From the NCBI RefSeq assembly GCF_964194025.1, contig NC_134468.1, positions 86,552,001 through 86,616,000 on the forward strand: a DNA stretch of 64,000 nt, written 5' to 3'. The translations under genes were made by a program, and so were the position numbers. The stretch's first letter is position 1; the number at the start of each line of letters is the position of its first letter. Origin of the DNA: Convolutriloba macropyga. Taxonomy: Eukaryota. The notes under the pieces are model-generated. The model was not told the DNA's origin. It searched no databases and was given only the letters and a program-made list of their open reading frames with translations. Positions 9,501-64,000 of this stretch are shown piece by piece.

Positions 9501-12500
9501 CGAAAAGTAAGATTTTCAAGCAGAAATTGAAAATTCTTGTATTGAGTTATCCGGAATTTCCATTTTTTAATCGAGAATTAAATTTGTTCAGCAGAATTTG
9601 TAAATGTTTGATTTGAGTTATCCAGCATTACCATTTTTTTTAATTGAAAAGTAATTTTGTTGAGCAGAAATTGTAAATGCTTGTTTTGAGATTGTTAATG
9701 TTTGATTTGAGTTACGCATTATTGCCGTTTTTTAATCGAAAAGTAGTTGTGTTGAGCAGAAATTGTAAATGTTTGATTTGAGTTCTACAGCATTACCATT
9801 TTTTAATCGAAAAGTGAATTTGTTGAGCATAAATTGCAAATGTTTTTTGAGATTGTTAATGTTTATTTGAGTTATCCAGCTTTACCAATTTTTAAATCGA
9901 AAAGTAAATTTGTTGAGCAGAAATTGTAAATCTTTGTTTGAGATTGGTTACGTTTAATTTGAATTATCCAGCATTGCCATTTTGTAATCGAAAAGTAAAT
10001 TTGTTGAGCAGAAATTGTAAATCTTTGATTTGAGTTATCCAGCTGTACCAATGTTAAAATGGAAAATTAAATTTGTTGAGAAGATATGGTAAATGTTTGT
10101 TTTGAGATTGTTTACATTTGATTTGAGTTATCCAGCATTACCATTTTTTAAGTCGAAAAGTAAGTTTTTCAAGCAGAAATTGAAAATTCTTGTATTGAGT
10201 TATCCGGCATTTTCTTTTTTTAATCGAAAATTAAATTTTTTCAGCAGAATTTGTAAATGTTTGATTTGAGTTATCCAGCCTTACCATTTTTTTAATTGAA
10301 AAGTAATTTTGTCGAGCAGAAATTGTAAATGCTTGTTTTGAGGTTGTTAATGTGTGATTTGAGTTACGCAATATTGCCGTTTTTTAATCGAAAAGTAGTT
10401 TTCTTGAGCAGAAATTGTAAATGTTTGATTTGATTTCTACAGCGATACCATTTTTTAATCGAAAAGTGAATTTGTTGAGCATAAATTGCAAATGTTTTTT
10501 TGTGATTGTTAATGTTTATTTGAGTTATCCAGCTTTACCAATTTTAAAATCGAAAAGAAAATTTGTTGAGCAGAAATTGTAAATCTTTGTTTGAGATTGG
10601 TTACGTTTAATTTGAATTATCCAGCATTGCCATTTTGTAATCGAAAAGTAAATTTGTTGAGCAGAAATTGTAAATCTTTGATTTGAGTTATCCAGTTGTA
10701 CCAATGTTAAAATCGAAAATTAAATTTGTTGAGAAGATATGGTAAATGTTTGTTTCGAGATTGTTTACATTTGATTTGAGTTATCCAGCATTGCCATTTT
10801 TTAATCAAAAAGTAAATTTGTCGAGCAAAAATTGTAAATGATTGTTTTGAGTTATCCAGCTTTACCAATTTTTAAATCATAAGCTAGATTTGTTGAGCAG
10901 TGATTATAAGTGCTTAATTTGAAATATCCAGCATTACCATTTTTTAAGTCGAAAAGTAAGATTTTCAAGCAGAAATTGAAAATTCTTGTATTGAGTTATC
11001 CGGAATTTCCATTTTTTAATCGAGAATTAAATTTGTTCAGCAGAATTTGTAAATGTTTGATTTGAGTTATCCAGCATTACCATTTTTTTAACTGAAAAGT
11101 AATTTTGTTGAGCAGAAATTGTAAATGCTTGTTTTGAGATTGTTAATGTTTGATTTGAGTTACGCATTATTGCCGTTTTTTAATCGAAAAGTAGTTGTGT
11201 TGAGCAGAAATTGTAAATGTTTGATTTGAGTTCTACAGCATTACCATTTTTTAATCGAAAAGTGAATTTGTTGAGCATAAATTGCAAATGTTTTTTGAGA
11301 TTGTTAATGTTTATTTGAGTTATCCAGCTTTACCAATTTTTAAATCGAAAAGTAAATTTGTTGAGCAGAAATTGTAAATCTTTGTTTGAGATTGGTTACG
11401 TTTAATTTGAATTATCCAGCATTGCCATTTTTTTAATCGAAAAGTAAATTTGTTGAGCAGAAATTGTAAATCTTTGATTTGAGTTATCCAGCTGTACCAA
11501 TGTTAAAATCGAAAATTAAATTTGTTGAGAAGATATGGTAAATGTTTGTTTTGAGATTGTTTACATTTGATTTGAGTTATCCAGCATTACCATTTTTTAA
11601 GTCGAAAAGTAAGTTTTTCAAGCAGAATTTGAAAATTCTTGTATTGAGTTATCCGGCATTTCCATTTTTTAATCGAAAATTAAATTTGTTCAGCAGAATT
11701 TGTAAATGTTTGATTTGAGTTATCCAGCCTTACCATTTTTTTAATTGAAAAGTAATTTTGTCGAGCAGAAATTGTAAATGCTTGTTTTGAGGTTGTTAAT
11801 GTGTGATTTGAGTTACGCAATATTGCCGTTTTTTAATCGAAAAGTAGTTTTCTTGAGCAGAAATTGTAATTGTTTGATTTGAGTTCTACAGCATTACCAT
11901 TTTGTAATCGAAAAGTGAGTTTGTTGAGCATAAATTGCAAATGTTTTTTGAGATTGTTAATGTTTATTTGAGTTATCCAGCTTTACCAATTTTTAAATCG
12001 AAAAGTAAATTTGTTGAGCAGAAATTGTAAATCTTTGTTTGAGATTGGTTACGTTTAATTTGAATTATCCAGCATTGCCATTTTGTAATCGAAAAGTAAA
12101 TTTGTTGAGCAGAAATTGTAAATCTTTGATTTGAGTTATCCAGTTGTACCAATGTTAAAATCGAAAATTAAATTTGTTGAGAAGATATCGTAAATGTTTG
12201 TTTTGAGATTGTTTACATTTGATTTGAGTTATCCAGCATTGCCATTTTTTAACCAAAAAGTAAATTTGTCGAGCAAAAATTGTAAATGTTTGTTTTGAGT
12301 TATCCAGCTTTACCAATTTTTAAATCATAAGCTAGATTTGTTGAGCAGTGATTCTAAGTGCTTGATTTGAAATATCCAGCATTACCATTTTTTAAGTCGA
12401 AAAGTAAGATTTTCAAGCAGAAATTGAAAATTCTTGTATTGAGTTATCCGGCATTTCCATTTTTTAATCGAGAATTAAATTTGTTCAGCAGAATTTGTAA

Positions 12501-13827
12501 ATGTTTGATTTGAGTTATCCAGCCTGACCATTTTTTTAATTGAAAAGTAATTTTGTCGAGCAGAAATTGTAAATGCTTGTTTTGAGGTTGTTAATGTTTG
12601 ATTTGAGTTACGAAATATTGCCGTTTTTTAATCGAAAAGTAGTTTCCTTGAGCAGAAATTGTAAATGTTTGATTTGATTTCTACAGCAATACCATTTTTT
12701 AATCGAAAAGTGAATTTGTTGAGCATAAATTGCAAATGTTTTTTGTGATTGTTAATGTTTATTTGAGTTATCCGGCTTTACCAATTTTAAAATCGAAAAA
12801 AAAATTTGTAGAGCAGAAATTGTAAATCTTTGTTTGAGATTGGTTACGTTTAATTTGAATTATCCTGCATTGCCATTTTGTAATCAAAAAGTAAATGTGT
12901 TGAGCAGAAAATGTAAATCTTTGATTTGAGTTATCAAGCTTTACCAATGTCAAAATCGAAAAGTGAAGTTGTTGAGCATAAATTGTAAGCGTTTGTTTTG
13001 AAGTTGGATACGTTTCATTTGAGTTATCCAGCATTGCCATATTTTAATCAAAAAGTAAATTGTCGAGCAGAAATTGTAAATGTTTGTTTTGAGTTATCCA
13101 GCTTTACCTTTTTTAAATTATAAGCTAAAATTGTTGAGCAGTGGTTCTAAGTGCTTGATTTGAGTTATCCAGCATTGCCTTTTTTTAAATCGAAAAGTAA
13201 GTTTCTAGAGCAGAAATTGAAAATCTTTGTTTTGAGTTATTCGGCATTACCATTTTTTAATCGAAAAGTAATTTTGTTGAGCAGACTTTGTAAATGTTTG
13301 ATTTGAGTTATCCAGCATTACCATTTTTGAATCAAAAAATAATATTGTTGAGCAGAAATTGTAAATGCTTGTTTTGAGATTGTTAATGTTTGATTTGAGT
13401 TATGCAGCATTGCCATTTTTAATCGAAAAGTAAATTTGTTGAGCAGAAAATTTAATTGTTTGATTTGAGCTATCCGGCATTACCATTTTTTAATCGAAAA
13501 GTAAATTTGTTGTGCAGAAATTGTAAATGTTTGATTTGAGTTATCCATCATTGCCATTTTTAAATCGAAAAGTAATTTTGTTGAACAGAAAGTGTAAATG
13601 TTTGATTTGAGTTATCCAGCATTACCATTTATTAATCGAAAAGTACATTTGTTGAGCAGAAATTGTAAATGTTTGATTTGAGTTATCCAGCATTGCCATT
13701 TTTAAATCGAAAAGTAATTTTGTTGAGCAGAAATTGTAAAAATTTGATTTGAGTTTTCCAGCATTGCCATTTTTAATCGAAAATAAAATTGGTTAGCGGA
13801 AACTGTATTTGTTTGCTATGAATTATC
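3592..13827. repeat. Satellite array: 71-bp and ~91-92-bp monomers with a ~795-bp 10-mer higher-order repeat
   Basis: Monomer ~TTGATTTGAGTTATCCAGCATTACCATTTTTTAATCGAAAAGTAAATTTGTTGAGCAGAAATTGTAAATGT (period 71, e.g. 3651/3722 and 13621/13692). The long variant adds ~GTTTTGAGATTGTTAATGTTT. The diagnostic variant CATAAGCTAG recurs at 5094, 5727, 6521, 7154, 7858, 8654, 9429, 10878, 12326 and (as TATAAGCTAA) ~13119. Confidence 0.98.
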
Positions 13828-17495: not shown

Positions 17496-17695
17496 NNNNN
17501 NNNNNNNNNNNNNNNNNNNNNNNNNNNNNNNNNNNNNNNNNNNNNNNNNNNNNNNNNNNNNNNNNNNNNNNNNNNNNNNNNNNNNNNNNNNNNNNNNNNN
17601 NNNNNNNNNNNNNNNNNNNNNNNNNNNNNNNNNNNNNNNNNNNNNNNNNNNNNNNNNNNNNNNNNNNNNNNNNNNNNNNNNNNNNNNNNNNNNNN
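17496..17695. other. Assembly gap (200 N)
   Basis: N run next to a (TG)n microsatellite. Confidence 1.
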
Positions 17696-28777: not shown

Positions 28778-29062
28778 GAGTCTTTCCCATTATAGAACCC
28801 CCCATGAAATTAGGGCCCTCTTTATGGTATAATTANNNNNNNNNNNNNNNNNNNNNNNNNNNNNNNNNNNNNNNNNNNNNNNNNNNNNNNNNNNNNNNNN
28901 NNNNNNNNNNNNNNNNNNNNNNNNNNNNNNNNNNNNNNNNNNNNNNNNNNNNNNNNNNNNNNNNNNNNNNNNNNNNNNNNNNNNNNNNNNNNNNNNNNNN
29001 NNNNNNNNNNNNNNNNNNNNNNNNNNNNNNNNNNNNNNNNNNNNNNNNNNNNNNNNNGACCC
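28778..29062 (+). mobile_element. MITE (GGGTCTTTCCCA family) spanning the N gap at 28836-29057
   Basis: GAGTCTTTCCCATTATAG..CCCCCATGAAATT matches 56304 onward; GACCC follows the gap; flanks GGAAAATT/AGAAAATA. Confidence 0.7.
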
Positions 29063-31203: not shown

Positions 31204-32671
31204 CAAGTCCTGTCTGCTAACCCAAGAAAGTTTTTAGAGATTTTTGCCAAATGTAGAGATATCTGTTATCCACGCTCCCTGTTTAAAAAAAAATATGAGA
31301 AATTTTATAAAAATTTGTTGGAAATCTTATTTTTTTCTTAAATGTAAGTACAACACATGAACTATTCCTTTTCCGTAAATCATATAACGAAACACGAATC
31401 TCATCTATTAATATAAGGTGTGAGGAATGGGCATGGGGCTTTTTGCATGTACCCCTGTATATACTCAATGTTTGGTACGCTGTTGGTGGGTTCTAACCTA
31501 TACCCAACGTAGCTCTCAATGGTACGCCGAAGGGGGACTCGATTGCTATTTAAATTTCCCATTGTTTGGTACGATAATTTGAGTTGCTATGTTCCCCACC
31601 CTGATGTTATTTTGGGCTCCGCACAGAATTCTATACTAAGCTGTAGAAATTGACTGATTTGGAACACAAATTGAGGTTTTGAGGTTCTATTGGTTCCCGG
31701 TCTTCGTTCGTTTGCCACGAGACAATTATTTCATTTCTGAACACTCTCGACTCCCTCAAATGAATTATAGAAATGCCTACAGCTTGACAAATGCCAAAGG
31801 TTTTGTTTTTAGTTTATCCTTATTAAAAAACGGTCGTGTGCCCGAATTACCTAAGTTTTCCCAGGCTAAAACTTTTCCTCCTCAAAATTTTTCCAAGCAG
31901 GTGTGCGCTCAAAGATATCCTAATCAGAAATTGTTTGAAAATGATCGGATAAAATTAAGTGAAGCAAATTTTGCACTTAATTTAGTTTTTATTTATAGAC
32001 CAAAAGTTAACTTAAACTACTGTACGACACATTTTCAAAGAAAATTCATAAATGGCTGAAGGCTTTACAAGACTATTTTATCAGGAATGTAAACCTTGTT
32101 TGAAATGTCTGTCAAGTTCAGCTGGTTAGAGGTTTTTCTTTTACACTTTCACAAACGGTCGGCAAGAAAGCTTTAATTTCGATTAATCTTCACCCAATAT
32201 TTATAACTAAAACTACTGAAATTTCAGTTAGTTCTATTTTTTTCATTTCATGAAACGTAAAACTTCAAACCACCATGAATATTTTGATTTAGATATCGTG
32301 CCAGATATTAGCCATATTACCATAATCTTATACACCCTAGATATTTCACATTCTCCAATCAAATAAACAATTTGTCCTTCTAAATAATTGTACAGAAACA
32401 CAACTTACATTTCAAAACTAGCATTAACATTTTAAACCAAACAATAAATAAGCTGTCAGTTTTGTAACAAATACTTTTCGATTGAGGTTAATTAAAGTTC
32501 TTATTTGCTCAATTTTGTCATTTCGACGACCTTCGAAAGAGAATTTCAAATTCAAAATCACCATTTGTACGGCAGAAATAACATTTATTATCTAAATTTT
32601 CAGAGAAGATATCTATTTTTTTTAAAAAATTTATTGAGTCTATACCATCAATCAGTATTTAATCTGTGGAT

Positions 32672-34159
32672 ATGGAGGATTATTCCGAGAACCGGAGTTA
32701 CCGTTGTCGCGAGATTTTGACAGTTATTTTGGCATTATCGTATCAATTTCTATTCGGCATTTATCTCACAATAACCGAACCCTTATTCCCTTTAAACGCC
32801 GACGAAAAGGGAATATCCCGAACAGTGGTCGGGCTAATTTCGGGAAGTTCGGACATCGCTTCGGCTCTATGCGGGCTCTTATTCCCTCAAATTGTTCATT
32901 TGATTAACATGAAAACATTTTTCTGGATAGGTTTGGGTTTATTAGCATGCTCTAACCTCCTTTTTGGGCTTATAACCTTTATAAATGTTAACGCTCTCTA
33001 CATAACAAGCGCATTAATTTTGAGAATTTTAATCGGAATCGGTTATTCGGCTTGTTGGGCGTCACTTTTCCCAATTCTGCTGGCTATTTACCCCGAGCGG
33101 ACTGGGCTGATGTCGGGTTTAACCGTCATAGCTTTCGAAAGCGGGTCAATTTTAGGGCCAATCGCTGCAAGTGTGTTTTACAAAATTCACGGCTTTTCCT
33201 TGCCTTATTTGGTTACGGGATCGTTAGGCTTAGTGGTCACTGTAATGTGTATTTTGTTCATGCTTCCTCAACACAAATACCGTTCAGATAAGTCTCGAAA
33301 GCGGCGAGAAAACCGAAAGATCGCCAAGCCGAAAAATACTTCGGAGGGACAACCGCTGGTTAAAAGCCAGGATTTTTCAAACAGTAGCCAGAAAAACAGT
33401 CGATTGATGATGAAAACTGTGTGTACGTCTTCAAAAATTGCAATCTGTACAATTCCATACGCTATTAATTATTCATTACTTGGAGTTTTAGCCGTCTTTT
33501 TTTCGCCATTTCTGCTGAACGTGGTCGGGGTTGAACAAACTTCGGTTGGGCTTTATTTCATACCCCACGCAGTTTTAGCCCTAATTTTTTCACCTCTAGT
33601 TGGCTATTTAGTTGACTTGAAGTTTAAATGGACAATATTTTTCATTTCACCAGTTTTGGGAATTTTGGGGTGTTTATTACTCGCGGTGTTATTGTTTTAT
33701 TCTGGGCATTATTCGAACGTTTTTCTGTTTTCTGGGCTTATTTTGGCGAGAGGTGTGAGCTATATAACCGGATATGTAGCTGGTCTAGTGATATTGCACG
33801 ACGTATTTGAGCAAGAATTAGCAACTTCAAGCGCTTCCGAGTATCGTTTCCTAATGTCGGCGTGGACAAACACCTGGTCAAAAGCTGGGGTGACTTTCGG
33901 AAGTATTTTCATTGGCGGGTTCGTGTTCGATTTCTTGGGCTATAAAGGCGCGATTGCGTTTGAATGTGGTATGTTTACGTTATCGATAATTTTATCGGTC
34001 GTATCTTACTGGCTGGTTTCTGTGAAAGGGGGTGATTCGAAATCGAGATACCTGAAAAATGGTTATGAGTTAGGTCAAAGAAAGGAAACAGGAGAAAAGA
34101 TTGAAAGGGAAAGAGCTGATGAGCAAGATTCTCTCTTGACTGAAACTTATGAGACCTGA
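32672..34159 (+). CDS. Intronless MFS transporter, SLC18B1-like (vesicular amine/polyamine transporter family)
   Basis: 495-aa ORF from ATG 32672 with about 12 hydrophobic segments and a basic central loop. PLFPLNADEKGISRTVVGLISG, LILRILIGIG and GSILGPIAASVFYKIHGFSLPY align by recall with SLC18B1 motifs. AATAAA lies ~10 bp after the stop. Confidence 0.9.
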   Translation: MEDYSENRSYRCREILTVILALSYQFLFGIYLTITEPLFPLNADEKGISRTVVGLISGSSDIASALCGLLFPQIVHLINMKTFFWIGLGLLACSNLLFGLITFINVNALYITSALILRILIGIGYSACWASLFPILLAIYPERTGLMSGLTVIAFESGSILGPIAASVFYKIHGFSLPYLVTGSLGLVVTVMCILFMLPQHKYRSDKSRKRRENRKIAKPKNTSEGQPLVKSQDFSNSSQKNSRLMMKTVCTSSKIAICTIPYAINYSLLGVLAVFFSPFLLNVVGVEQTSVGLYFIPHAVLALIFSPLVGYLVDLKFKWTIFFISPVLGILGCLLLAVLLFYSGHYSNVFLFSGLILARGVSYITGYVAGLVILHDVFEQELATSSASEYRFLMSAWTNTWSKAGVTFGSIFIGGFVFDFLGYKGAIAFECGMFTLSIILSVVSYWLVSVKGGDSKSRYLKNGYELGQRKETGEKIERERADEQDSLLTETYET

Positions 34160-44124: not shown

Positions 44125-46102
44125 ATGAAATACGAACTAAGCTCAAAACTCTCCTACGCTTCTCGTGAGGAACAAAAAATGGCGACTTCTAAAATTTCTT
44201 CGAGTTCTGTCGTGATTAAGGAAGCTGCAACTTCGTCAATTGTTGTGACGAACGAACAAAAATTGTCCAGAAGTACAAGCCGAAGAAAAGCGATAATGTC
44301 AGCAGTTGCCGACGACGAGAAGCTTTCAACGTCGTCAATATCGCTGGCATCAGCTTCGTCGTCGGAATTCGCAAGCGAACATACATTAAACTCCTCGTCA
44401 ATTGTGTCCCACGGACAGAAAGTTTCGCTGTCAGAAGTTGACGAACATGACTTGTCGAGCGTCGAAGGAGAAAGAAAAATTTTAATGACGTCAGAACTCG
44501 GTAGTCAACAGAGTTTGACGCCAATGACGATCGAAAACGGTGGCGGTGAAACGACTTCAACTGTTGTGAACAAAAAGATAATGTCCTCTTCAACTGCTGC
44601 AAAAAATCTGAGGTCGGCTGTCGTGAACGAAAAAATTTTATTGACTTCGGTTACTGAGACAAGTAAAAAGACATCGTTGACCTCTGTTGCTGATGTGAAG
44701 AACCAGAAATTATCTTCTACGATTGTTCGAAGCAAACAGGACTCGTCATCAACTGATTTTGAGAGTGATGAAATTTCAACTTCAGTTGCTCGCGGAGGAA
44801 AGGCCAGTTTTTCATCTCGAGCTCCCGAGGGTGAAATTGTTTTGGAATCGACAAGTGCGTCGCCTGAACAAATACTGTCCAATTCGGCTGTTGAAAGCCA
44901 GCAGACATCGTCTGCTGATTTCATCAAGCGAAGCACGTCATCTTCTGCAACTGAAAGCCGACAGATGTCATCGACCGTCGTCAGAAAAAAGAGTTCGACC
45001 TCTGCGACCCTCATGACTGAGAAGATATCGTCTTCAAATGGAATCGTAAGTGATCAACAGACATTTTCAGCGACGGGTCTCGTGAACAAAAGGAGTTCAA
45101 TGTCATTAACAGGTACTCAGAACAATCGGAGCTCTTCAACGTCGGCGGTCATGGCAAAGTCAGGCTCGTTATCTGCAGCTTTTGTTGATGAACAATTTTT
45201 GGAATCGACAAACGAAATGGCTCAACCAGTCTTGTCATATACAAGATCTGTTGTCGCTGGCAAACAGAGATCCAATTCGTCGGCTGTTGTCCTGCGCAAA
45301 CAGAACTCCGGGTCATCAGCTTTCGAGGATGATAACGAACTTTCAGAATCTACAGATGATGAACAAATTTCGTCATCGCTGTTTGCCAGAACTGGAAAAA
45401 CGACATCGTCATCAACAGTTGCGAGGAAACAAAGCTCATCGTCTACTGTTGTCGTTAACAGAACCAGGTCATCATTGTCATCTCTTGTAAGACAACAAAG
45501 ATATGCATCATCAGCTGTTGCGAGTGAAACGATTACATCGACTTCGGTTTCCGAGAGCCGCAGAATTACATCATCGTCCGCAACAGAAAGCAAAATGATT
45601 GCATCGACGGCTGTGAAGAGTCAAAGGATTGCGTCATCGTCGGACGCTGCGACTAGAACGATTACGTCATCGTCGGCTGCTGCGAGTAAAAAGATTACAT
45701 CATCATCGGCTGCCGAGAGTAAAATTATTACGTCATCTTCGGCTGCCGCAAGTAAGAGGATTACATCATCATCGGTTGTCGCTGGTACAAAGATTACATC
45801 ATCATCAGCAGCCGCGGGTCAGAAAACGATAAAAGCGTCATCATTTGACACGAAAGATGAAGAAATACTTTCTGATGTGAGCGAACAAAATTCGGAATCC
45901 GAAGAAATAGACGAGAATATTTTGTCCTCATCAACATCGGTTGTTCTTAATCAAAAGCAAGTTGCCTCGACCGCAAACAAGAAACATAACCAGAGCTTGT
46001 TAACTACTACAGTTGATAAGAATAAAAGTGGAAGCAAAGAACAGAAACGGGAGGAGCTGAAACTCGAAAAAGATGGAGGCAGATTGGCTCAGTCTAAGAA
46101 AG
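44125..46102 (+). CDS. Large unknown protein, exon with Ser/Thr-rich, 11-residue-periodic low-complexity region
   Basis: 659 open codons with raised GC relative to the flanks; donor AAG|GTAACA (phase 1) where the composition changes to intron-like. Confidence 0.8.
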
Positions 46103-46407
46103 GTAACAAATATTTATATATTTTTTTAATTTTCCCCCCATTTTGTTGATTTCTGAAGCTGTGGTGATTCGTGATTTTCAAACATTACAGAAAGAAATTG
46201 AAAACACGATGTTAGATCTGAACGTATATGTAATCAATTTTTCCGCAACAGCTGAGACACTTCAAAACGGATCGCATGTGTATCCAATTGTATTCTCACC
46301 TTTTATTTGCTTGGGTGTTTGATATACAAAACAATATGTTGACTCAATTTAAAAGGCATACAATTTATTATTTTTTATTTTTCGTTTTTTTTTTGTTTTT
46401 TTTTCAG

Positions 46408-50991: not shown

Positions 50992-51445
50992 TTTTTTTTT
51001 GCACAAAATTAAGTGCAATAAGAAATATATTTAGTAATTTGTCAGTGATTCAATCTGAACAAGTCCCAAATCATGTTTACAATTGAATCAAGCCTTCCTT
51101 TGAGAATTTCAAACGCTCTTAGTTTGGGGGGAGAAATTTATGTTCTCTTGCTCCAAAATTCTTTTGATCACATAAAAAATTGAATTTGAAAATTGGTAGC
51201 AACTTTTTTTTAAATTAATACCTAGGATTTCTGCAATAAACACAAACATTTGCAAAAAAATATTTAAAAAAGTGAAACACATTCTTTTGCAAACTGAAAA
51301 GACCTGGAAACTAGTTATAAGATTAACGTCGGGTTGAGAACGTGAGAAAGAAAATTTTTTGAAAACCAATAAGTGTCATTAACAAAATATTTGAGAACCT
51401 GCTGGCTCTTAATTTTTAGTTTGTTGCTCATTTTGATAATTATAG

Positions 51446-54400
51446 GTGAATTTGATGCGTGGATTCGTCTACGAGAACGAACAAATTGGAACTGCGATTC
51501 GGAGTACGCTGAAATCATAAAACACCTGGACCAAATCACAGATGTGACACTTAAAAAATCTCTTTGTTTGACCCTGTTGCACCCAAGTTACCTGTCCCAA
51601 ATGTGGGCGCGACCCAGGGAACTTTTTGCCCTAAACCCAAGCGGGGAGGATGACAAAACGCCCTCAAATGCCCAATCAAGACAGGAGTACACAATGAACA
51701 GCGCACTGAACATGAACTCGTCCAAAAATGAGGAGCTGGCGTTTTGGAAACGACTTCGAGAAAAGTTGAGCAAGTTGAACCCGGAGACTACGACTGACGT
51801 TTCAACTTTGCCCAAAATGGAGTTTACCCCTGAATGTCTGCAAATTAACCCGCCTTTTGCTGGTTTGGTACCAGAAGGTGTTGCATCGGCCGAGGGAATC
51901 CTTGACATCTGGAATCAGATATCGGCCAACGATTCCTGCCAGGGGCTCAAACCGACGAATGAAAAGGTCAGCGGTTCCTTGCAAAGTGACTTTTCAGTCG
52001 CAAAATTGCTGGAAACAACTTACAGTTCTCTGATTGCCGCTGCAAAAACTGACGTTTTAACTTGGGAAAAAGTTTTGGAAAACGTGGAAAAAGTTGTTGT
52101 TTCAAGCACGGGTGAAAAGTCGCAGACTCGAGAGGAAATTTTCGGAAACTCGAAGAGTAAAAAACTTCAAAACGAAGCAGTTTTGGCTCTCGCCTCGTTT
52201 GCTTTCGTCAAATGGTACGAAGTTGATCGAGAGAAAATACCGGCAATCGTGATGCTATTCGCCAAACTGCTGGAACAACAAAAACTTCTCGGCAGCGACG
52301 AAAACGCGAATAGTTTTGATTACGTAATGAGCTTAATCGAGTCGGAAGGCTTGGCCAATGAGCAAACTATGAGCTCTTGGTCTAGACTTCGGGAAATGAA
52401 TATTGCGTCAGAGGAGAAAACGTCGGCAGCCAATCAGAGTTCGTCGGTATGTGAACAAGTCGATGAATCGGAAAAAGTGACAGAACCCGTTTTGTCGGTT
52501 GGTTTGGAATCGAAAGGCGAAGTTTACACTCGAGCGAGGGAAATCTTTTCGGTCGAGTTTAGTGAATGTTTGCAAGAAACGTGCGGCAAACTTTCGGACC
52601 AAGACTTTGTTGCTGGTTTTATAAACTGCATACAACTTGCAAGAGCGCTTGATCGTGATCTTGAAGAAGAGTTTAAATGGGTTGAAGTTGGAGTCAAAGA
52701 CCAAAATGAGCTTATTTCTGAGAACAAAGACAAAAAGAGTGACAAAAAACAGAACTTGTTGTCTAATAAGACCAAAACAGACCAAGAAAAGATAACGGAC
52801 AATTGCATTTTGAGGATTCGGACATCAGTAAATACCTTATTTGGAATTGGTAGCGAGAAACAAATCGACATGCGAGAAACGAGCAGCCTTGAAGACAGTG
52901 AACCCCGAGCAAAGGTCAAAAAAGTTCAGCTCGATTCGGAAGAGCAAAGTCGCAGCAGTCAGTTTGCAGACCAGAAGATAAAGTGGGAACATGATCAGGT
53001 GGTTCTGGCGATAGCGTCGTTTGCTTTTATTGACTGGCAAAAAGTGGATCCAGAATTGATTCCGGCTCTGGTTCTGTTCTACGCCAGATTGGTCGAGCAC
53101 CAGAGGTTGCTTGGTAAGAGTGGAACCGAATTTGAAAAGTACTTGGTCAGTGAAACTGTATCAGAATGCAACGCGTCCGAATCGAGCGAGCTTGTCGCCT
53201 CGTGGCTGCGACTTCGTGAAATGGTCGAAAAACCAAATCACAAATCTAAAGCTTCGCTTGAATCAATTTCTGTTCACGAAAAACTTGCGCAAAGTGAACA
53301 AAATTCTTGTCACATTTCGGCCATTGCTTCAGAGCAGAAAACTGAAGATTTTATCCGAACACGTGAAATCTTTTCTGAAGTGTTTGCGCGGTGTGTTGAG
53401 GAATCACGGGGAAAAACTGGCTTTGAGGGTTCGGTGGCCGAATCGTTCGCTGAACCGAAAATGGGCAAATGTTTAGAATCTATTCTTGAGAATTGCTTTG
53501 CTGACCTCGAAGCTGGTGAGTTATCTGTGAAGAAGTCAACTGGTACAAAATCTAAAATTTCGTCACAAAAGAGAGAAACTGATTTCGATTTTGAGAAAGA
53601 ATTGACATCTTTTGAGCAGAAAATTCTCGCAATTGCGTCATTTGGTTACATAAACTGGAGCAAAGTTGATCCTCAACTTATCCCGGCCTTGGTTATGTTC
53701 TATGCCCAGTTGATCGAACATCAAAAATTACTCGGAAACAAAATCCCGTCGGAATCGTACATCATCAATGAAATTGCGTCACAATGCAAAGGAAGCGAAT
53801 CTTCTAAGTTGCTTTCGGCTTGGAATCGCCTTCGAGAAATGACTGAAAAACCGAAGCCAACATCGAAGGTTTCAAATCATATGATGTCAGAACTGGACAA
53901 ACTGTCCAAATCTGATGTAAATTTGGGAGAAATTCTGGCTTTAGCGTGTGAACAAAAACCAGAAGACTACATCCGAACGCGTGAAATTTTCGCGGAAGTT
54001 TTCCCAAAATGCGTTGAAGAGTCGGGCAATATTAGCTTTGAAGGGTGCTTAGCCGAAACGTTCAGCAAAATGAAAATGGGCAAATGTTTGGAGTCTGATT
54101 TGAAAAACTGTTTCGCCCAACTTTTGGCACAAGAATTAGAGGACCAAGAACCCGAGGTCAGAAAAACTGACTCAATTTCACAAGATCGAAGTAAAAATAT
54201 GTTCAATTTTGACGATAAAATGAAGTATTTTGAACAAAGTATGCTGGCCATTGCTTCGTTTGGATATATCGACTGGCACAAAGTTGATCCGGAACTTATA
54301 CCGTCTTTGGTTTTGTTCTACGCTAGACTTGTTGAGCACCAGAAAGTGATCGGCTACAGCGTTCCAGCGGACGAGTATATACTTAGCAAGATCATTTCAG

Positions 54401-56263
54401 AATGCAAAGCGAACGAGTCTGATGAAAATATTTCAGCTTGGAACCGATTGCGAGAAATGACCGAAAAATCGCGAATGACTTCAAAAGCTTGTGAACAGTT
54501 CACGAACGAACATGAAACAATGTCAGTTAAAGAGGACAATTTGAACAAAATTCTCGCTTTAGCAGCGCAACAAAAAACGGAGGACTACATTCGTACGCGT
54601 GAAATATTTGCTGAAGTTTTTGAAAAGTGTGGACAGGAGTCACGAATTAGCGATTTTGAGGGTGTTTTAGCCGAAACGTTCAAAGAGCAGAAACTTGGCC
54701 ATGGTTTACAGACAGATTTGTCAAGAATATACGAGTTTGCAATGTCTGAAAAACTTTCGACTAAAAATGACGATACAGTTCAAGTGTCCACCGACCCACA
54801 AGAACGCGAAGATGTATTTGGTTCTGAAAAGTCGACATCTGTTCGTCAAAGGGTCCTTGCTATGGCTTCCGAGGCCTTCATCAAATGGCTGCAACTTGAT
54901 TCCGCTCAAGCAATACCTGCTGTTTTGATGTTCTACGCTCAGATATTGATTCAAAACAACACACTACCTGAAAACCCGAAAGATTTCGAATACTTTATCA
55001 CCAAAATTCTTTCGAACTGTCTTGGGTCTGATAATGCGCCCAAATCTTGGATCAGACCTAGAGAAATGCCGGTTGAGGTACCAGAAAAACCGAGCGCTGA
55101 AAATCAACTAGTGCCGATATCGGAAAAATTACTGGGAAGTAATTTTTCCACGAAACCAATTACAGCATTTGGGTTGGAAAAGAACCTTTCGGAGTTTTCG
55201 CGGCCCCGGGAATTACTTTCGGCTATTTTTGAGGAAACGCTTCAAGAACCCTGCGGCGTGATTCGTGACAGTTTCTTGGCCAGCGTGGTGAAATTGAACA
55301 AACTTGCCCGAGCCCTCGAAATGAACATCGACTTCGAAAAAACGTGGATAAACGTGAAAGATCTCAACCGAAAAGAAGCCTTGAACGGCAGAAACGAAAC
55401 AAGAAAACTTCAGAAAATCGATTACGTCAAAAACGGTTCAACTAACAACGCGGAACTTTCACAGGATAAAAACATGATCGTTGCTCGAAACGCACTTGGG
55501 GTTGTAAAACTCGAAGAGACGCACAATAAAGAATTCCGAGTTTTCAACACGAAAGCGAACAAACTTCCGACGCCTAAAAGTTGTCATTTCACGAGCAAAG
55601 AAACGATTGATCGCGCTCTTGCCCATGGCAAAAATGACAAAATTGACTTATTTGAGGCGCACAAATTAAACTCACAAACACGTAAAGGCACTAAAACTTT
55701 CGAAAGTTTGCAAGATGATAACTGCACTTCCGAAAGCGAAAAATTGATTAGCAAAGTCCTCGCCAAAGCCAAAAGTCAAGGTTTAATTTTGCTTCAATCT
55801 GAAGACGAAATTGACCAAAAAGGCGCAAATCCGAATGTCGAAAAAGCCGAAGAGTTTTCAAGTGAGCAAAATTGTGTTCACGCAACGAAAAAAAGGTACT
55901 CGGAAAAGATTTTGGCTTCGTGCGCGGTCGAGAACTTGAAATTGATTTCATTGGACGACGAAATCGCAATTGATGACGTCAGAAAGTGCCAAACGTTGTC
56001 TGATTTGTGGACGAAAGAGGAATACGAGTCGGATCCGTCATTGATGACAAAATTTTTGGCGTTCGGAAAAGAGGCGAATGATATTAAATACGAGAAAGCG
56101 AATGAAGATGAACTGGAGGTGATGGAGGGGGCTATTTTGCCTCACGAGCAGCAATCTTTGGAAGCCGCGAGAACCCGAAAGGTCAGGATGGCCAATGTTC
56201 CAGTCGAGGCCATGTCAAAGGTCACGCTGAGGTTGATCGAGGTGGCACAGGTCATCGACAAAG
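51446..56263 (+). CDS. Large unknown protein, 4.8-kb exon with five ~205-aa internal repeats
   Basis: Acceptor ATTATAG|GT (phase 1), 1606 open codons, donor AAG|GTACGA (phase 1). LAxASF repeats at about 52180, 53000, 53620, 54240 and 54850. Confidence 0.88.
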
Positions 56264-56303
56264 GTACGAATTTTGGAATATATTCTGTCCTCAAAGGTTA
56301 TTG

Positions 56304-56449
56304 GGGTCTTTCCCATTATAGCCCCCCATGAAATTGTAGCCCCCATTATGGTATGTTTACCATAATTTGGGGGGGGGGGGGGGTGAGGGACTACAGGTTA
56401 TCTGACCACTAAGCTGGGGGGGGGTTATGGTTTATAGTGGGAAACACCC
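56304..56449 (+). mobile_element. MITE with TIR GGGTCTTTCCCA/TGGGAAACACCC and a perfect 8-bp TSD GGTTATTG
   Basis: TSD at 56296-56303 and 56450-56457; shares CCACTAAGCTGGGG with the other MITEs. A further partial MITE follows at 56460-56578. Confidence 0.88.
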
Positions 56450-57308
56450 GGTTATTGAACTTATATCTTTTACGTCCACCAGGTGCACGTGCTATTTTTT
56501 TTATAATAACGTGCTATACAACACATAATTTGTAATTGGGGGACATAAAAAACACCTGAGGCTGACACCGAATAGAACAGACATTCTTTTCAATTTTAAT
56601 TCAAACATAAGTAATTAGAACATGAGTAATACATAAATAATTAGTATTCGGACACGAAATGTTTTCAAATGCTGAGATTTATTATGGTACCAAAAAGTTG
56701 CTACAACATGATTTGTGAACTTTCTGTATCTGATAGAATCTATTTCTGTCAAAGAATTCCCAGATCTATTTTCCAAAATATGTAGACCTAAATTTCGCTG
56801 CGTCTATTCGCAGACTAGCGTGTTCTGTTTATCCCATTACAGACAAAACAGCTCGATGAAAGCCCAGGGTGAGGTCCGCGACCAAAAACAGTTATTGGCC
56901 AGACCGACTTGGGTCGCGGACAGGGAGTCTGGTGCGAACCAACTCAATGTTCCGGAAAAAATTGAGTCGAGCCCTCCGTCTAAAAATTTTAAAAGAGATT
57001 TTAATTTCGTTTTCTCACTTAAACAGAAAAGATGACAAAACCGTCTTGTTTTTTTTTACTGTTTGCGATAGTGCTTGGCTGGAAAAATGCTGGAATTGGA
57101 TGAGCGACAAAAATCTTGAGAGATTTCAATCACAACCACACGCACGAGATGCTTCCAAACCATAACTTGAAATTGACGGCAATGTAATCCTGAAGTACAA
57201 AAATCGAATATTGTCAGCTATTTATGCTGAGTAAAAAAGTGGAAAATAGTTGATTAATAAAGCAATTCATATGTTTCGAGCAGTTTTGATTCAACGGTTA
57301 ACAAAACA

Positions 57309-58040
57309 AACAAAAAGGCTCGTTACACTCGAAGTTCCAACCGCGCTCATCGACATTTTTGGTATAACTGTCTACCAGAGGAGAAACAGATAGAAAACCA
57401 CCAAAATTTAAGTATTTTGGTGTATGGCGTATAAACAAAAATTGGCGTATGAACAAAAAATATTGTCTCCAATACAAATACTTCAGTGGAGTAATAAAAA
57501 GCCTTATTAGATTGATGAGATCTGCCGTATGCAAATACCCAAACATAGAAAAGTGAAATCTGGTAGTATCAAACCAAAAAACCAAAATTTAACGCGTAAA
57601 ACTGCAATAAAGATTGAATTGGACTCAGTAGAAAGAAGAAGCATTCTTTTTTGCAGACACTAGCCTACAAGTTGACCAAATTAAGAGAAAATAGTGGCAA
57701 AATTTAAAAAGCCATTGTTTATTCAAACATCAAAATTTGACAAGCCAAAATGACCACAAGCTTTCGAGTTAAAAACTAGATACATTAATTTGGAACTGCT
57801 TAGTAAGCCAATTTGACCCAACACCAATGAGCTTTGATTTAAATTGTTCTCTTCTTTAATTAACATAAAAAAGATAGATTTTTTTAAAAGACCGACTGAT
57901 TACAATTGGATTTTTTTGGATGGCAACAGTCTGGCACCAAAAATGGCCTTGCTATTGCTGTTCGTCTATTAAGAACATTTAATTGTATTGAATGTAATAA
58001 ATGTAGCTAATTTGTAAATAAAAGAATACAAAAAGTATTG
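57309..58040 (-). mobile_element. Internally deleted HINE-like copy
   Basis: 57309-57545 matches 47076-47310; 57550-58010 matches 48655-49130. Confidence 0.7.
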
Positions 58041-58530
58041 CTTTTTTCTCAAATACTTATTGGAAATTAGTTTTTTTATAAAAAAAAACTGTACAAACCG
58101 TCTACTATACCTTTAAAAAGTGAAAAACGTTATAATGAGAAGACTAGAGAACTAATTTATGCTCCAATTCGTTGCCTTAACGTTTTCCTTGTTGTTCTTA
58201 ACATATAACTTACATAGCCTTTTCACGCAAAAAAAGTTTTGAATGTGTCGATTTGAAATAGAGAGAAAATAGAGAAATAGAGAAATAAAGAGATGGAAAA
58301 CTGTTTATCAGCTTTAATGTTGTTTAGATGTTTTTTTAACGTTTTTATAACTATATTCACATCGTAACGTTTTAGAACAAAACCTGCATATTTTGAGGGT
58401 CATGGGTCATAAACGTCAGGTCATAAAAATTGTACTTGGAACCATAAAAAGCTATGGAGGGGAGGGAGGGATGAAACAGAACAGATATAAATTCACGCCT
58501 AACTGTTGTAACAGCGAGGAATAAATTTAG

Positions 58531-58771
58531 GAACTGGCTGTGACCTCGACGTGGCGCTTGAGAAATCTGCTGCAGAAGTTGACTCTGCTAACAACCAAGT
58601 GGTTGAGCTTCAACTGAACTGGGAGGAGTTCTGTCCTTATTTGGAAGAAATTATGAGTGCAGTTGTCACACCAGACGAAGAGAAGGGAAATAACGAGGAG
58701 AAAATGGAATATATGTTTAACATGACGGCCAATGGTGGTGCAGTGGCTGCAAGTGACATTACGGCACAAAT
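58531..58771 (+). CDS. Large unknown protein, internal exon
   Basis: TTTAG acceptor, phase 1 (compatible with 56263); acidic open frame; donor GTGAGT, phase 2. Confidence 0.8.
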
Positions 58772-60417
58772 GTGAGTTTTTCTGTGAACATTTTAGGCGC
58801 TAAAAAGTGGCCATTGTCACCAAAAAAAGAGCATTCATGCTCACAAAATGAACAGTCAGAGATGTGGGGAATAATAGCAAAGGACGGCTGAGAACAGGCT
58901 ACTGTTAATGCACTGCAGACTAGAAGATTAATGCTGCTCCGCTGCAATTACGCAGAAACTAACTTATTTTTATTTTTAATAGCCGCGAAGCGACAGCAGC
59001 TATTATTGGAGACATCGTGGCTTTTTTTACAATTCAAAGAATTTGAATTGTATTGGAGGCTGTCTTTTTTTAAAGATCTGTTCACTCATTTTCATGATTT
59101 TTGAAGTCAAAATGGAGTAGTGATTTTGGTCACGCCGAAACAGGAAGTGGAGCAAAAAAGCGATTTGTTTCGCGGCGTGAAATTTTTTACTCTAATTTTG
59201 AAGTAGAGTGAGAAAACGGTGTTTGAACAAAAAAAGATTGCTTTCTCGCTAGTGGTTTTTTGTTCACAAGCGGCAATTCCACTTTGGTTTTTACTTTTTT
59301 TCGATTTTTTGGATTGGATTTTTTCTAAATGGTTTTACCAATCCTTTCATAGTTCATTCCAGGCCTAGTTTTTTGTTTGAACTAAAGTTCTTTTTCTCGC
59401 TAGTGGTTTTTTTTGGTCACATGCGGCATTTTGACATTGATTTTCATTCAGATGGAAATGGTTTTTCTTTTTCAGATGGAAATGGATTTCGTAATTCACT
59501 CATAGTCCGTTCTATGTCTAGTTTTTGTTTAGTCAATGAAAATTTTTTGACTTGTACGTCAGGACTGGTCCTGCATCGTTTTTTCAATTCGTCGTCTCCA
59601 TCAATTATTCTTGCGACCTGACTTCTTTCTTGGAATTGACTTTTCAATTTAAGTGATTTCTACTGCTTTGCAGTTAGAATTTGTGTGCGAGACGTCATTT
59701 GTTCTGCTTTCATGTCAATTGCGTGACTTACCTCACTCAATAAAAAACTTCTGAACTCGCTTAATGAACTTTAAATTTTATCAACATTTACTAGTTAGAG
59801 GTTAATAGTGTGCATCTAAGTAGTGCCTAACGTATATGCCTTAATTCTTGAGTATCAGAGTCTTGAATTTTTTGATTTCGAATTTTTATTTTGAAACAGC
59901 TCCATTAGGGTTTTTTCCTTATAGAGCTTATGTGTCTCATAAAAATTACAATCCGAATCTAACTCAAAAAGTCTAGTGGTCTATTAAAGGACTGGTGGTC
60001 GATCTATCTATCTTATTTCTTTAGTTTTTTCAATTCATAGAAGGACATAAGTGTCAATCGCGGCTATTTTCCGGCAATCTGCCCGCTATGTTGTTATTAT
60101 TATTATAAGTTGCAATTTTTTTCATAGATTCTCAAATTTTTCAGGTTTTTTTAGATTGTGAAAGGTAGTAAACAAGCTAACAAAAAAGATATCAAGCTCA
60201 GTAATATGTCTGTTTAATGCGTAAAAGCCAAAAACTAACGTACATTTTTTGAAGCGAATTGTTTTGTATGAGTTATTTCTTGATATGTTGCTTAATTTGA
60301 ATTCGAGAATTTTTCCTTTACTTTTCTCCTTTACCTGTAACACTGTTGAATTTATTAGGAACAGTTAATGGAAAGAAACAACTGAGCAACAAATTAGTTA
60401 TGTTAGCTTGTTACCAG

Positions 60418-60880
60418 GTACGAACGCGGGGAGATTGATTCAACTATTTCAATGGCTGGATATGAAAACCATCCCGAAAATGAGCTTATCAGAGAAAGCT
60501 CCCAACTCGAGCTCAACAAACTCCTCAAAATCGCTGACGAATCTTGCGAGCCAGACAAATTTGACCAGTATCCGGCGTACATCGAAGAGTTTGTGGAGTA
60601 CACAAATATCGACTCGACCACAGAAAGCTTCGCCAGTGAGTGCCTGGGAAGTGTCGAGAACATCGAAAGACTCGAGGCGCTGGGTTCGTTGCAAAGTGTT
60701 ATCAGCGAGCATTTATCGACTGCAGACGACATGAGTGAAGTCGTGTACGAGAAGCCCGAAGACTCGGACGACGAAGAAGTTGACGAGTTGATAGAGCCGA
60801 CTGAGAAGCCACAAGTGGAACACGCTCCCAGACGCGGATTCGGAAGGAATTTGAAGCCAGAGGACGCGGGAGTGTTTGAA
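60418..60880 (+). CDS. Large unknown protein, acidic internal exon
   Basis: TTACCAG acceptor, phase 2 (compatible with 58771); Glu/Asp-rich frame; donor GTAAAT, phase 0. Confidence 0.8.
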
Positions 60881-60940
60881 GTAAATTTGTACCGTATATT
60901 TTCTCTTCCTTCATTTTCCAATTATACCAACAACTGCCTG

Positions 60941-61567: not shown

Positions 61568-64000
61568 CAATTTTCTAAGTCATAAAATTAATTTCCAAAA
61601 CAAAACTAATTTGTTGTTGACAGTCATAATCCTTTTCTGCTTAGTACCTTTTATTTTCACAACTGTTTTGCCTGCTCAAACTCCAATGGATCAACAGACA
61701 GTGAAGCTGCTGACCTACACAGGAAAGGCACAGGACTTTCCAATCTGGAGCACAAGATTTGTGGCGAAGATGCAGACGAAGGGACTCTACAAATCACTAC
61801 TGGGGACAGAGGAGCAACCCAACGAGCCTGCGCCACTGGCCAATGGGGCAACCAATGATGAGAAGAAGAACCACAAGGTGCTGAAGGATGCATATGAGAA
61901 GGAAGTTGCAGATATCAAGGAGAAACGGAAAAATGTGTGGTGCCATCTGGCACTGACTCTAGATGCAACAACCCTCATGCTGATGAGACATGACTGTGTG
62001 GGAGATGATGGCATTGGAGATGGAGCAAAGGCTTAGAAGCTTTTGCAAGAGAGATTTCAGACTGTGGAGACGCCGACAGTGGTGACTTTAGTGGCACAGC
62101 TTGCTCGACTGCAGCTCGAGGATTCTGAGGATTTGGACAGCTTCTTCATCAGAGGACAGGAGTTGCTCACAAGGCTACAAGAAGCAGGGGAAGCAGTCTC
62201 AGAGACCCTCTTCAACGCCTTGGTCCTCAATGGTCTGCCAATGAGGTATGAAAGTTTTGTTATACAGGAAAGCTTCAACACGGCAACAAACTTCACAGAG
62301 TTGAGGAAAAGGCTGCAGAAATTTCATGAGAGCACGGTGCAGAGACACAAGGGACAAAGTGGTTCAGTGGCACTGGCAGTGAAGCGTGACTTCAAGAAGG
62401 GACCCAAGAAAGGAAACTGTTTTGTGTGTGGGATTCCTGGAAACTTTGCCAAGGACTGCAGGAAGAAGGAGACAGCACAATACAGCAAGTGTGGTGAGAA
62501 GGGTCACCTAGACAGGGCATGCAGGAGACAAAGAGATGGAGGCAAACATGAGTCAGTGGCAATGGATCCAACATTGGCTACACCAGACGGGGAATGCTGG
62601 GCAGCTCTTACCCAGTGGAAGACAGCAGGCATGCTAGTGGACAGTGGTTGTACAGATCACACATCGATGCGTTCCTGGACTTTGTGCCCATTCAATCAGT
62701 GGTCAGAAATCCCAACAGAGAGGCTTTCAGAGTGGTGGGCAGAGGCTGTGTGAGGATCAGCATACCCTCAAACAAAGGGGAATTCCAATGCGAACTCAAA
62801 AATGTTCTGTGTGTGCCGGACTATTCTTCAAACCTCCTACCAGTCTCAAGATGCACGGAATGAGGCCATAGCTTCACTTTCGAGAGAGGAAACAGCTGCA
62901 TGAAACTCCAGAAGGGAACTCGGGTAAAACTAACACAAGAAAACAATTTGTTTTACTCACCCTGCAGCGTTCTAGAATTCAAGATGAGTTCCAACAGCGT
63001 GAAACTTGACAGTGCAAGGAAGTGGCACAGACGATTGGGTCATTTGAATCAAGCGGATGTGGTCAGGAATGCACCAGAAACAGTGGGGGAACTCGATGAT
63101 GTATGCAATGTGTGTGCATTGGCCAAGATCACAAAGACTCCAGTACCAAGAGTGGCAGAGACCCAAGCAGAGGAGAAGCTGGAGAAGGTGTTCACAGACG
63201 TGATGGGACCTTTCAGAGTAGAGTCACTGTCAGGGTTCCGGTTCTGCATAGTGTTTGCAGACCAGTACACGAAGTTTGTGTTTGTGGAATTGCTTAAGGC
63301 AAAGAGTGAAGCATTGGCCAGCCTGAAGAAATTTGTTCTCAGTGTGGGGACGCCCAAGAAGCTGAGGCAAGACAATGCGAAGGAGTTTCTCTCAGAGCAG
63401 TTCAAAACGTACGCGGTTCAAAACGTTTCTTTGCGGTCAATCCGGTTCAAAACGTTTCTTTGCGGTCAATCCTTGACAACAAAGAAACGGCTGAACTACT
63501 AGATGATGGGTCGGAACTGGGAATCTGGCACCCAGATGATGGTCATCAAGACGTTGAAAACAGAGAACGACAGGACACATCTACTGCAATAAAGGAGGAG
63601 TGGCATGACGCAGGGAGCGTGAATACTCAAGAAACAACACTGAGACAAGAGGCCTCGGATGTTGGAGAAACAGCACTAGATGAAGGATCTACTGCAACAA
63701 GAGGGAGTCACAGAGACTCAGAGTCCCTGGAAGACAGTGACACAGAAGACTTCTCACAGTTAGAGACAGTTGGCTTCGATGAAGATGCACTGGAACACGC
63801 GGACAGAGCAGAGCCCAGACGAGGGACACGAGCAAGGAATGTTCCGCAATTGTTTGGAGAAGTCAGGACCCATCTTGCTGTGACTGAGGGCGACTATGTG
63901 GAACCCACAACAGTCTACGAAGCCAAGCAAGGTGACGATTGGGACCAGTGGCACCGGGCAATGAAGGACGAGGTCAAGGCACTCCAAGACAACGAGACTT

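Follow-up and report, generated by a model that had tools for sequence, protein, structure and literature searches.

The 64,000-nucleotide window analysed here (contig NC_134468.1 of Convolutriloba macropyga, positions 86,552,001 to 86,616,000 of the forward strand) contains a giant exon at 51446..56263 (+ strand; 4818 nucleotides, 1606 codons) that would encode five tandem modules of about 180 residues, predicted to be all-α, as the middle part of a 2827-residue protein. To judge from its sequence, the module is a genuine, undescribed and lineage-restricted repeat domain. Its most prominent feature is a pair of aromatic-x-R-x-R-E motifs separated by 49 residues. According to the interpretation favoured here, which is given about an even chance of being right, this is an acoel-restricted single-copy gene with an undescribed all-α module, in which the 49-residue spacing represents the inherited period of an older sub-repeat within a length-constrained module.

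The open frame that includes the exon (51373–56331, + strand, 1652 residues) was translated and searched for the pattern [WYF]xRxRE. The search recovered exactly 13 motifs, all at the coordinates reported in a first-pass annotation of this DNA, compared with a mean of 0.02 and a maximum of two in shuffles of the same protein. Three motifs lie towards the N-terminus (starting at nucleotides 51460, 51604 and 51745 on the + strand), 48 and then 47 residues apart. The others form five pairs on the same strand, each consisting of a W motif followed by a Y or F motif (52378/52525, 53203/53350, 53821/53968, 54439/54586 and 55048/55195). The distance within the pair is 49 residues (147 nucleotides) in five of five cases and the successive W-to-W periods are 275, 206, 206 and 203 residues; recomputation thus returned the annotated values. 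A helix beginning LA(I/L/M)AS is found in all five units.

An exact-sequence look-up clusters this frame with RefSeq entry XP_075251415.1 (‘uncharacterized protein LOC142343907’, C. macropyga, 2827 residues), which tblastn maps back onto the window at 99–100% identity in four pieces (44125–46128, 51445–56271, 58521–58772 and 60419–60883). The giant exon accounts for residues 660–2268 at 99.9% identity and holds all 13 motifs and the five units. It is bordered by an AG acceptor ending at 51445 and a GT donor (GTACGA) starting at 56264, so that position 51446, at which the repeat stretch had originally been taken to begin, equals the true exon start. Upstream, exon 1 (44125..46102, + strand; residues 1–668, 99% identity, GT donor at 46103) encodes a Ser/Thr-rich low-complexity N-terminus of about 660 residues with short tandem repeats. 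Downstream lie a coding exon at 58521..58772 (+ strand; tblastn of residues 2263–2346) and a further, acidic coding exon at 60419..60883 (+ strand; residues 2347–2501, and residues 874–1041 of a relative from the JGI collection described below), both with approximate borders. The rest of the C-terminal exons fall outside the 64 kb window. The 1652-residue open frame stands in AT-rich DNA, and a profile search of the 1.18 Gb C. macropyga genome matched only the five units of this gene and no paralogue. The protein is mostly polar and has no signal peptide and is therefore presumably intracellular.

A profile built from 12 aligned repeat units was scored against 1.84 billion representative proteins and produced four true matches and one spurious low-complexity match. 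The true matches are the C. macropyga protein itself, the giant exon of its orthologue in the acoel Symsagittifera roscoffensis (XP_063722455.1), a 3980-nucleotide contig from JGI and a 160 kb contig from ENA; the profile search proposed with the initial annotation thus finds the protein and three relatives only. Two word-based searches recovered the same relatives. A word-based search with the C-terminal third gave no matches, probably because full-length proteins are not cluster representatives, and a metagenome scan with the 12-unit alignment gave 122 pattern matches, none of which was confirmed. The two full-length orthologues, those of C. macropyga and S. roscoffensis, have exactly 13 motifs each in identical order, and the motifs, their order and the exon structure are kept in at least three other sources at 25–50% identity. 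In the JGI relative the frame runs unbroken from the giant exon through both downstream exons of the window, skipping two introns, which suggests that this contig derives from the spliced RNA of a related species. With four matches in 1.84 billion proteins and one locus in its own genome, the gene is taxonomically restricted and single copy. Two of the four sources are taxonomically placed and both of these named species are acoels, suggesting that the gene is confined to acoels.

A genome note for C. macropyga has been published (PMC13650328). A literature search on XP_075251415.1 and XP_063722455.1 found no paper citing either identifier within the library covered, and neither record carries a domain, repeat or function annotation. 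The sequence is already public as an uncharacterized RefSeq protein; the repeat family itself is undescribed.

Searches for known families were uniformly negative. A Pfam-A scan of the exon, both full-length proteins, the JGI relative and 16 single units produced no match at the gathering threshold; the residual hits were scattered, with E values above 0.01, far below the cut-off and with no family recurring across units, and the segments that follow the repeats gave only similar noise. Against the sequences in the PDB, phmmer returned no matches and the profile returned only noise (E values of 0.2 and 0.56). Queries of the ESM Atlas with one unit, the N-terminal block and the C-terminal third found no usable neighbour. 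AlphaFold2 models of one unit, calculated with alignments of 12 and 16 rows, are all-helical with mean predicted local distance difference test (pLDDT) scores of 51 and 56, respectively, and a predicted template-modelling score (pTM) of 0.23. A Foldseek search with the better model against the PDB and the AlphaFold Database clusters gave nothing below an E value of 0.4, with template-modelling scores of at most 0.2, although this fold search is weak evidence given the low confidence of the query model. All of these comparisons, of sequence, profile, embedding neighbourhood and fold, thus bear out the suggestion that the repeat fits no known family, and the structural check yields an all-α prediction with no fold match at a model confidence too low for a fold to be assigned.

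Several short functional signatures were also considered and rejected. An Akt-type RxRxxS/T site fits units 3 and 4 only, a candidate LC3-interacting region (WxxL) lacks acidic context and fails in unit 5, and the PP1-binding RVxF pattern is unmet. A membrane hairpin formed by the LA and IPALV helices is disfavoured because each segment is too short and charged residues lie between them.

The five units of the exon, all on the + strand, are unit 1 (52138..52689, long form, W at 52378 and Y at 52525; profile E value 5.7 × 10−66), the short-form units 2 (52960..53514, W at 53203 and F at 53350; 3.3 × 10−67), 3 (53581..54132, W at 53821 and Y at 53968; 1.1 × 10−72) and 4 (54199..54750, W at 54439 and Y at 54586; 3.4 × 10−71), and the terminal-type unit 5 (54817..55359, W at 55048 and F at 55195; 1.8 × 10−61). 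An alignment of 16 units from the four sources has the invariant columns Ala18, Trp27, Trp83, Arg85, Arg87, Glu88, Arg134, Arg136 and Glu137, and column 132 is tyrosine or phenylalanine in every unit. Two hydrophobic helices, LAIASF..W and IPALV.FYA.L, stand at the start of the unit and are the sole part modelled with a pLDDT above 70. These are predicted to be followed by a helix ending in the W motif, a polar linker and the Y motif, which would open a long amphipathic helix. A further conserved tryptophan lies about 50 residues past the Y motif.

The motif pair also occurs ahead of the units. At 51460..51621 (+ strand) the pattern search finds WIRLRE and WARPRE, 48 residues apart and unaccompanied by the LA helices. 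The first is a W-type motif and the second ends in RELF; this would effectively be a sixth W/Y-type pair. Its two motifs are 48 residues apart in C. macropyga and in the ENA relative, whose pair is placed in a separate upstream exon, and 49 apart in S. roscoffensis. The best-conserved block of the protein follows at 51727..51900 (+ strand) and comprises a lone W-type motif (FWKRLREKLSKL) and then a PPFAGL.PEG segment; it is near-identical in S. roscoffensis and recognizable in the ENA relative.

The spacing between motifs was examined across the family by counting, in five sequences that together represent the four sources, all adjacent motifs separated by 45–53 residues. Among the resulting 22 pairs the distance is 49 residues in 14, 48 in three, 50 in two, 51 in two and 47 in one, with orthologous units showing spacings of 50 and 51 as well as 49. 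The spacing described initially as invariant is therefore near-invariant, falling within 47–51 residues in 22 of 22 pairs, and the departures from 49 amount to a mild refutation of the stricter claim. Other anchors are held at similarly regular distances: 51–56 residues from Trp27 to Trp83, 49–51 from Trp83 to residue 132 and 49–51 from residue 132 to the next tryptophan. The spacer between units 4 and 5 is 90, 91 and 91 residues in three species, and the third N-terminal motif lies 211, 207 and 206 residues from the first unit tryptophan in three lineages. As these other anchor distances are equally constrained, the 49-residue interval is not special, and conservation of length is a property of the whole protein.

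The linker between the two motifs is variable in sequence, with a column entropy of 2.1–2.4 bits versus 1.0–1.6 bits in the motif blocks, and almost free of gaps. Its strong divergence, noted at first reading, is thus real in the sense of low sequence conservation, but three small islands are kept: K-S-K-A past the W motif, S..EKL in mid-linker and I-x-A-x-A/G-x-E about 13 residues before the Y motif. One to five prolines are present in 16 of 17 within-unit linkers and glycine in most, 50–77% of the residues are polar, and the AlphaFold models show the linker as mostly coil. The proposal that 49 residues correspond to seven heptads fails because the linkers carry proline and glycine and are modelled as mostly non-helical.

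The two halves of the motif pair appear to be related. When the 49-column profiles surrounding the W and Y motifs were compared with hhalign, the match had a probability of 72% (E value 3.5 × 10−5 over 25 columns), against at most 5% for other segment pairs. This points to an ancient duplication of a segment about 49 residues long. The repeat units were also placed in a maximum-likelihood tree, in which unit 1 of C. macropyga is joined with unit 1 of S. roscoffensis, the terminal units of these two species and of the JGI relative form a clade (support 99/99), and units 2–4 of C. macropyga group with one JGI unit and unit 4 of S. roscoffensis in a short-form clade (support 100/99). The short units are without a conserved tail element of about 60 residues that is present in unit 1 of C. 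macropyga and units 1–3 of S. roscoffensis. On this evidence the repeat of about 205 residues, reported initially as the basic period and indeed present in the units, is a shortened derivative of an ancestral unit of about 270 residues (267–275) that multiplied in the Convolutriloba lineage. Unit periods range over 203–275 residues in C. macropyga, 205–267 in S. roscoffensis and 328–734 in the ENA relative.

The favoured reading combines these observations as follows. Each module would carry four aromatic anchors about 50 residues apart, the middle two of which bear the aromatic-x-R-x-R-E helix motif. The W-type and Y-type halves would be copies of the older sub-repeat of about 49 residues, the pair recurring at the N-terminus unaccompanied by other module parts, and the spacing would have persisted because a compact module is constrained in length. 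Within a helical motif, stacking of the i+4 arginine against the aromatic ring and pairing of the i+2 arginine with the i+5 glutamate could brace the helix from within and leave a charged face exposed. The two motif helices probably lie against each other, forming the ends of a compact element of about 55 residues. The ancestral protein would already have had first, middle and last units, the shortened middle unit being multiplied later in Convolutriloba. The most likely role is that of a large intracellular multivalent scaffold in which repeated helical modules present identical surfaces.

A number of points weigh against this interpretation. The models are poor (pLDDT 51 and 56, pTM 0.23), and neither a compact fold nor the packing of the motif helices is demonstrated by them. 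The W and Y halves show a modest similarity, part of which comes from the motif they have in common. A polar, proline-bearing, disorder-like linker would normally drift in length, so that something more than folding alone may be holding it constant. With two of the four sources placed taxonomically, restriction to acoels is inferred. Finally, the four C. macropyga read runs examined are all genomic DNA, with even coverage and no splice joints, and are uninformative on expression.

The first-pass annotation had proposed a molecular ruler or docking scaffold that binds a periodic partner such as a filament. In the form considered here, the W/Y pairs would be bipartite sites whose two parts a constant-length linker keeps at a fixed distance, and the protein would bind its periodic partner (a cytoskeletal filament, for instance) in six or more copies. 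This is considered unlikely, although it is the strongest of the alternatives. All 16 aligned units keep the surface-type residues W, R, R and E without exception amid variable surroundings, the linker stays within 47–51 residues in all 22 pairs from four lineages despite its low conservation and disorder-like composition, and the pair also stands alone at the N-terminus. Against this, no partner has been identified, the other distances within the unit are just as conserved, and the linkers, containing prolines and glycines, are not coiled coil. Moreover, the unit period varies from 203 to 734 residues between units and species, unlike nebulin-type rulers, and this speaks against the array as a whole being a ruler in register with a filament; the functional claim is unsupported. 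A more specific form, in which the paired W/Y RxRE helices constitute a new bipartite docking site with the 49-residue gap matching a periodic partner peculiar to acoel cells (for example a cytoskeletal or ciliary-rootlet filament), is judged somewhat less probable still. If true, this would make the protein a multivalent cross-linker specific to the lineage, with a fold not seen before.

Two more specialized roles appear improbable. Centrin targets contain either a W-x-x-L-x-x-x-L triad (as in XPC) or an [FL]-x-x-W-[KR] pattern (as in Sfi1), and the best-conserved motif here, L-A-F-W-K-R-L-R-E-K-L, fits both. By analogy, the motifs might be amphipathic, basic, Trp-anchored helices for centrin or calmodulin, the protein then forming part of a calcium-responsive fibre. 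Most of the unit motifs, however, lack the hydrophobic residue at position 8 or have a proline at position 4, the Y-type motif does not fit, the spacing is 49 residues rather than the 23–36 of Sfi1, and no Pfam Sfi1 match was obtained even at E values of up to 1; this EF-hand role is accordingly rated as quite improbable. Marginally less credit is given to an actin-associated scaffold, with a WH2-like motif past unit 5 and the repeats running along actin. A WH2-like stretch of the S. roscoffensis protein (residues 1395–1414 of the giant-exon product) scores 17.3 bits (E value 0.0038), and the JGI relative has a similar string, yet the score is below the Pfam WH2 (PF02205) cut-off of 23.1 bits and the JGI and ENA relatives give no WH2 match. 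In the C. macropyga protein (window positions ∼55400–55480) the motif survives without its hydrophobic half and likewise gives no match, and nothing ties the repeats themselves to actin. The remaining explanation, that the stretch is a chance frame, a pseudogene or a set of transposon-derived repeats, could draw on the fact that the runs examined are genomic DNA and that no RNA run containing the stretch was listed. It is regarded as very nearly negligible in view of the 1652-residue frame at a single-copy locus, the conservation across at least three sources of motifs, order and exon structure at 25–50% identity, and the intron-less transcript-like contig in a relative.

Outside the giant exon, the gene shows further repetitive features. 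Exon 1 contains repeats of about 11 residues of the ITSSSAAxSK type and a 99-nucleotide tandem period at 45617–45814; its counterpart in the S. roscoffensis orthologue is only about 95 residues long, compared with about 660 here, so this part of the protein would seem to expand and contract freely. The C-terminus, encoded beyond the window, has three copies of PP-x-[ST]-K-M-x-[IV]-x-V-[ST]-R at residues ∼2620–2790 (1165–1235 in the JGI relative); S. roscoffensis has INNMxxKVTR repeats there, and the final residues (FEH.SIEM) are conserved. In the ENA relative, about ten near-identical 33-residue tandem repeats (ETIVV[YH]GRNLNVKNKTPDVEVSETENEET) lie between units 2 and 3 (∼4000–5200, residues ∼740–1130); precomputed Pfam hits show a faint TIG signal in these repeats, which the C. 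macropyga protein lacks.

The intron segment at 58780–60170 reaches summed contig depths of 10^4 to 10^6 in the genomic DNA runs versus about 50 for the exons, and therefore appears to belong to a very high-copy repeat family; smaller depth peaks occur at 56194–56591, 56791–56989 and 57587–57984. Downstream of the 60419–60883 exon, presumably in the next intron, is the remnant of a copia-type long terminal repeat retroelement (61611–63502, + strand). It has a gag domain (Retrotran_gag_2), a GAG-pre-integrase domain just below the Pfam cut-off (28.2 versus 28.4 bits) and an integrase core at 26 bits (cut-off 32.6 bits), the domains being split over separate reading frames. Elsewhere in the window, a satellite array of about 10 kb (3612–13827) has nested periods of 71–72, 91–92, 143 and 163–164 nucleotides, a G+C content of 27% and a strong positive GC skew of 0.2–0.28. 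An intron-less open reading frame of 497 codons at 32666–34159 (+ strand) encodes a Major Facilitator Superfamily transporter (Pfam MFS_1, E value 9 × 10−32). Runs of N are present at 17496–17695, adjoining a dinucleotide microsatellite, and at 28836–29057.

The repeat is a candidate for a new Pfam entry as a new protein repeat family, in a group of animals that attracts interest with regard to early bilaterian evolution and photosymbiosis. It would also document the growth of a lineage-specific giant protein, from a sub-repeat of about 49 residues to a module of about 270, which was then shortened by deletion to about 205 residues and expanded locally. It is genuinely odd that a polar, fast-evolving linker should keep an almost constant length, and this merits structural study.

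Among known systems, Sfi1 and the giant centrin-binding proteins of ciliates (PF08457) share with this protein a large size, many short helical motifs combining tryptophan and basic residues, regular spacing and a proposed multivalent scaffold role. However, the Sfi1 signature, A-x7-L-L-x3-[FL]-x2-W-[KR] every 23–36 residues together with a Pfam match, is not found here: the motif spacing is 47–51 residues, there is no sequence match and the motifs form part of a larger module (about 180 residues) with extra conserved hydrophobic helices. The nebulin rulers (PF00880), which are the model behind the ruler idea, likewise consist of tandem modules in super-repeats of about 200–250 residues encoded by very large genes. 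They differ in their 35-residue SDxxYK modules, to which neither the motif nor any Pfam match corresponds; the period here is irregular (203–734 residues), there are only five units and a filament partner is not in evidence. Comparison with α-solenoids of the HEAT/ARM-like type, which are built from hairpins of about 40–50 residues, is limited by a model confidence too low to judge; Pfam and Foldseek give no match, and a polar proline-containing linker of about 40 residues sets the present module apart. The likeness to these solenoids lies in the predicted all-α structure, the sub-repeat of about 50 residues and the charged and aromatic residues in each sub-repeat.

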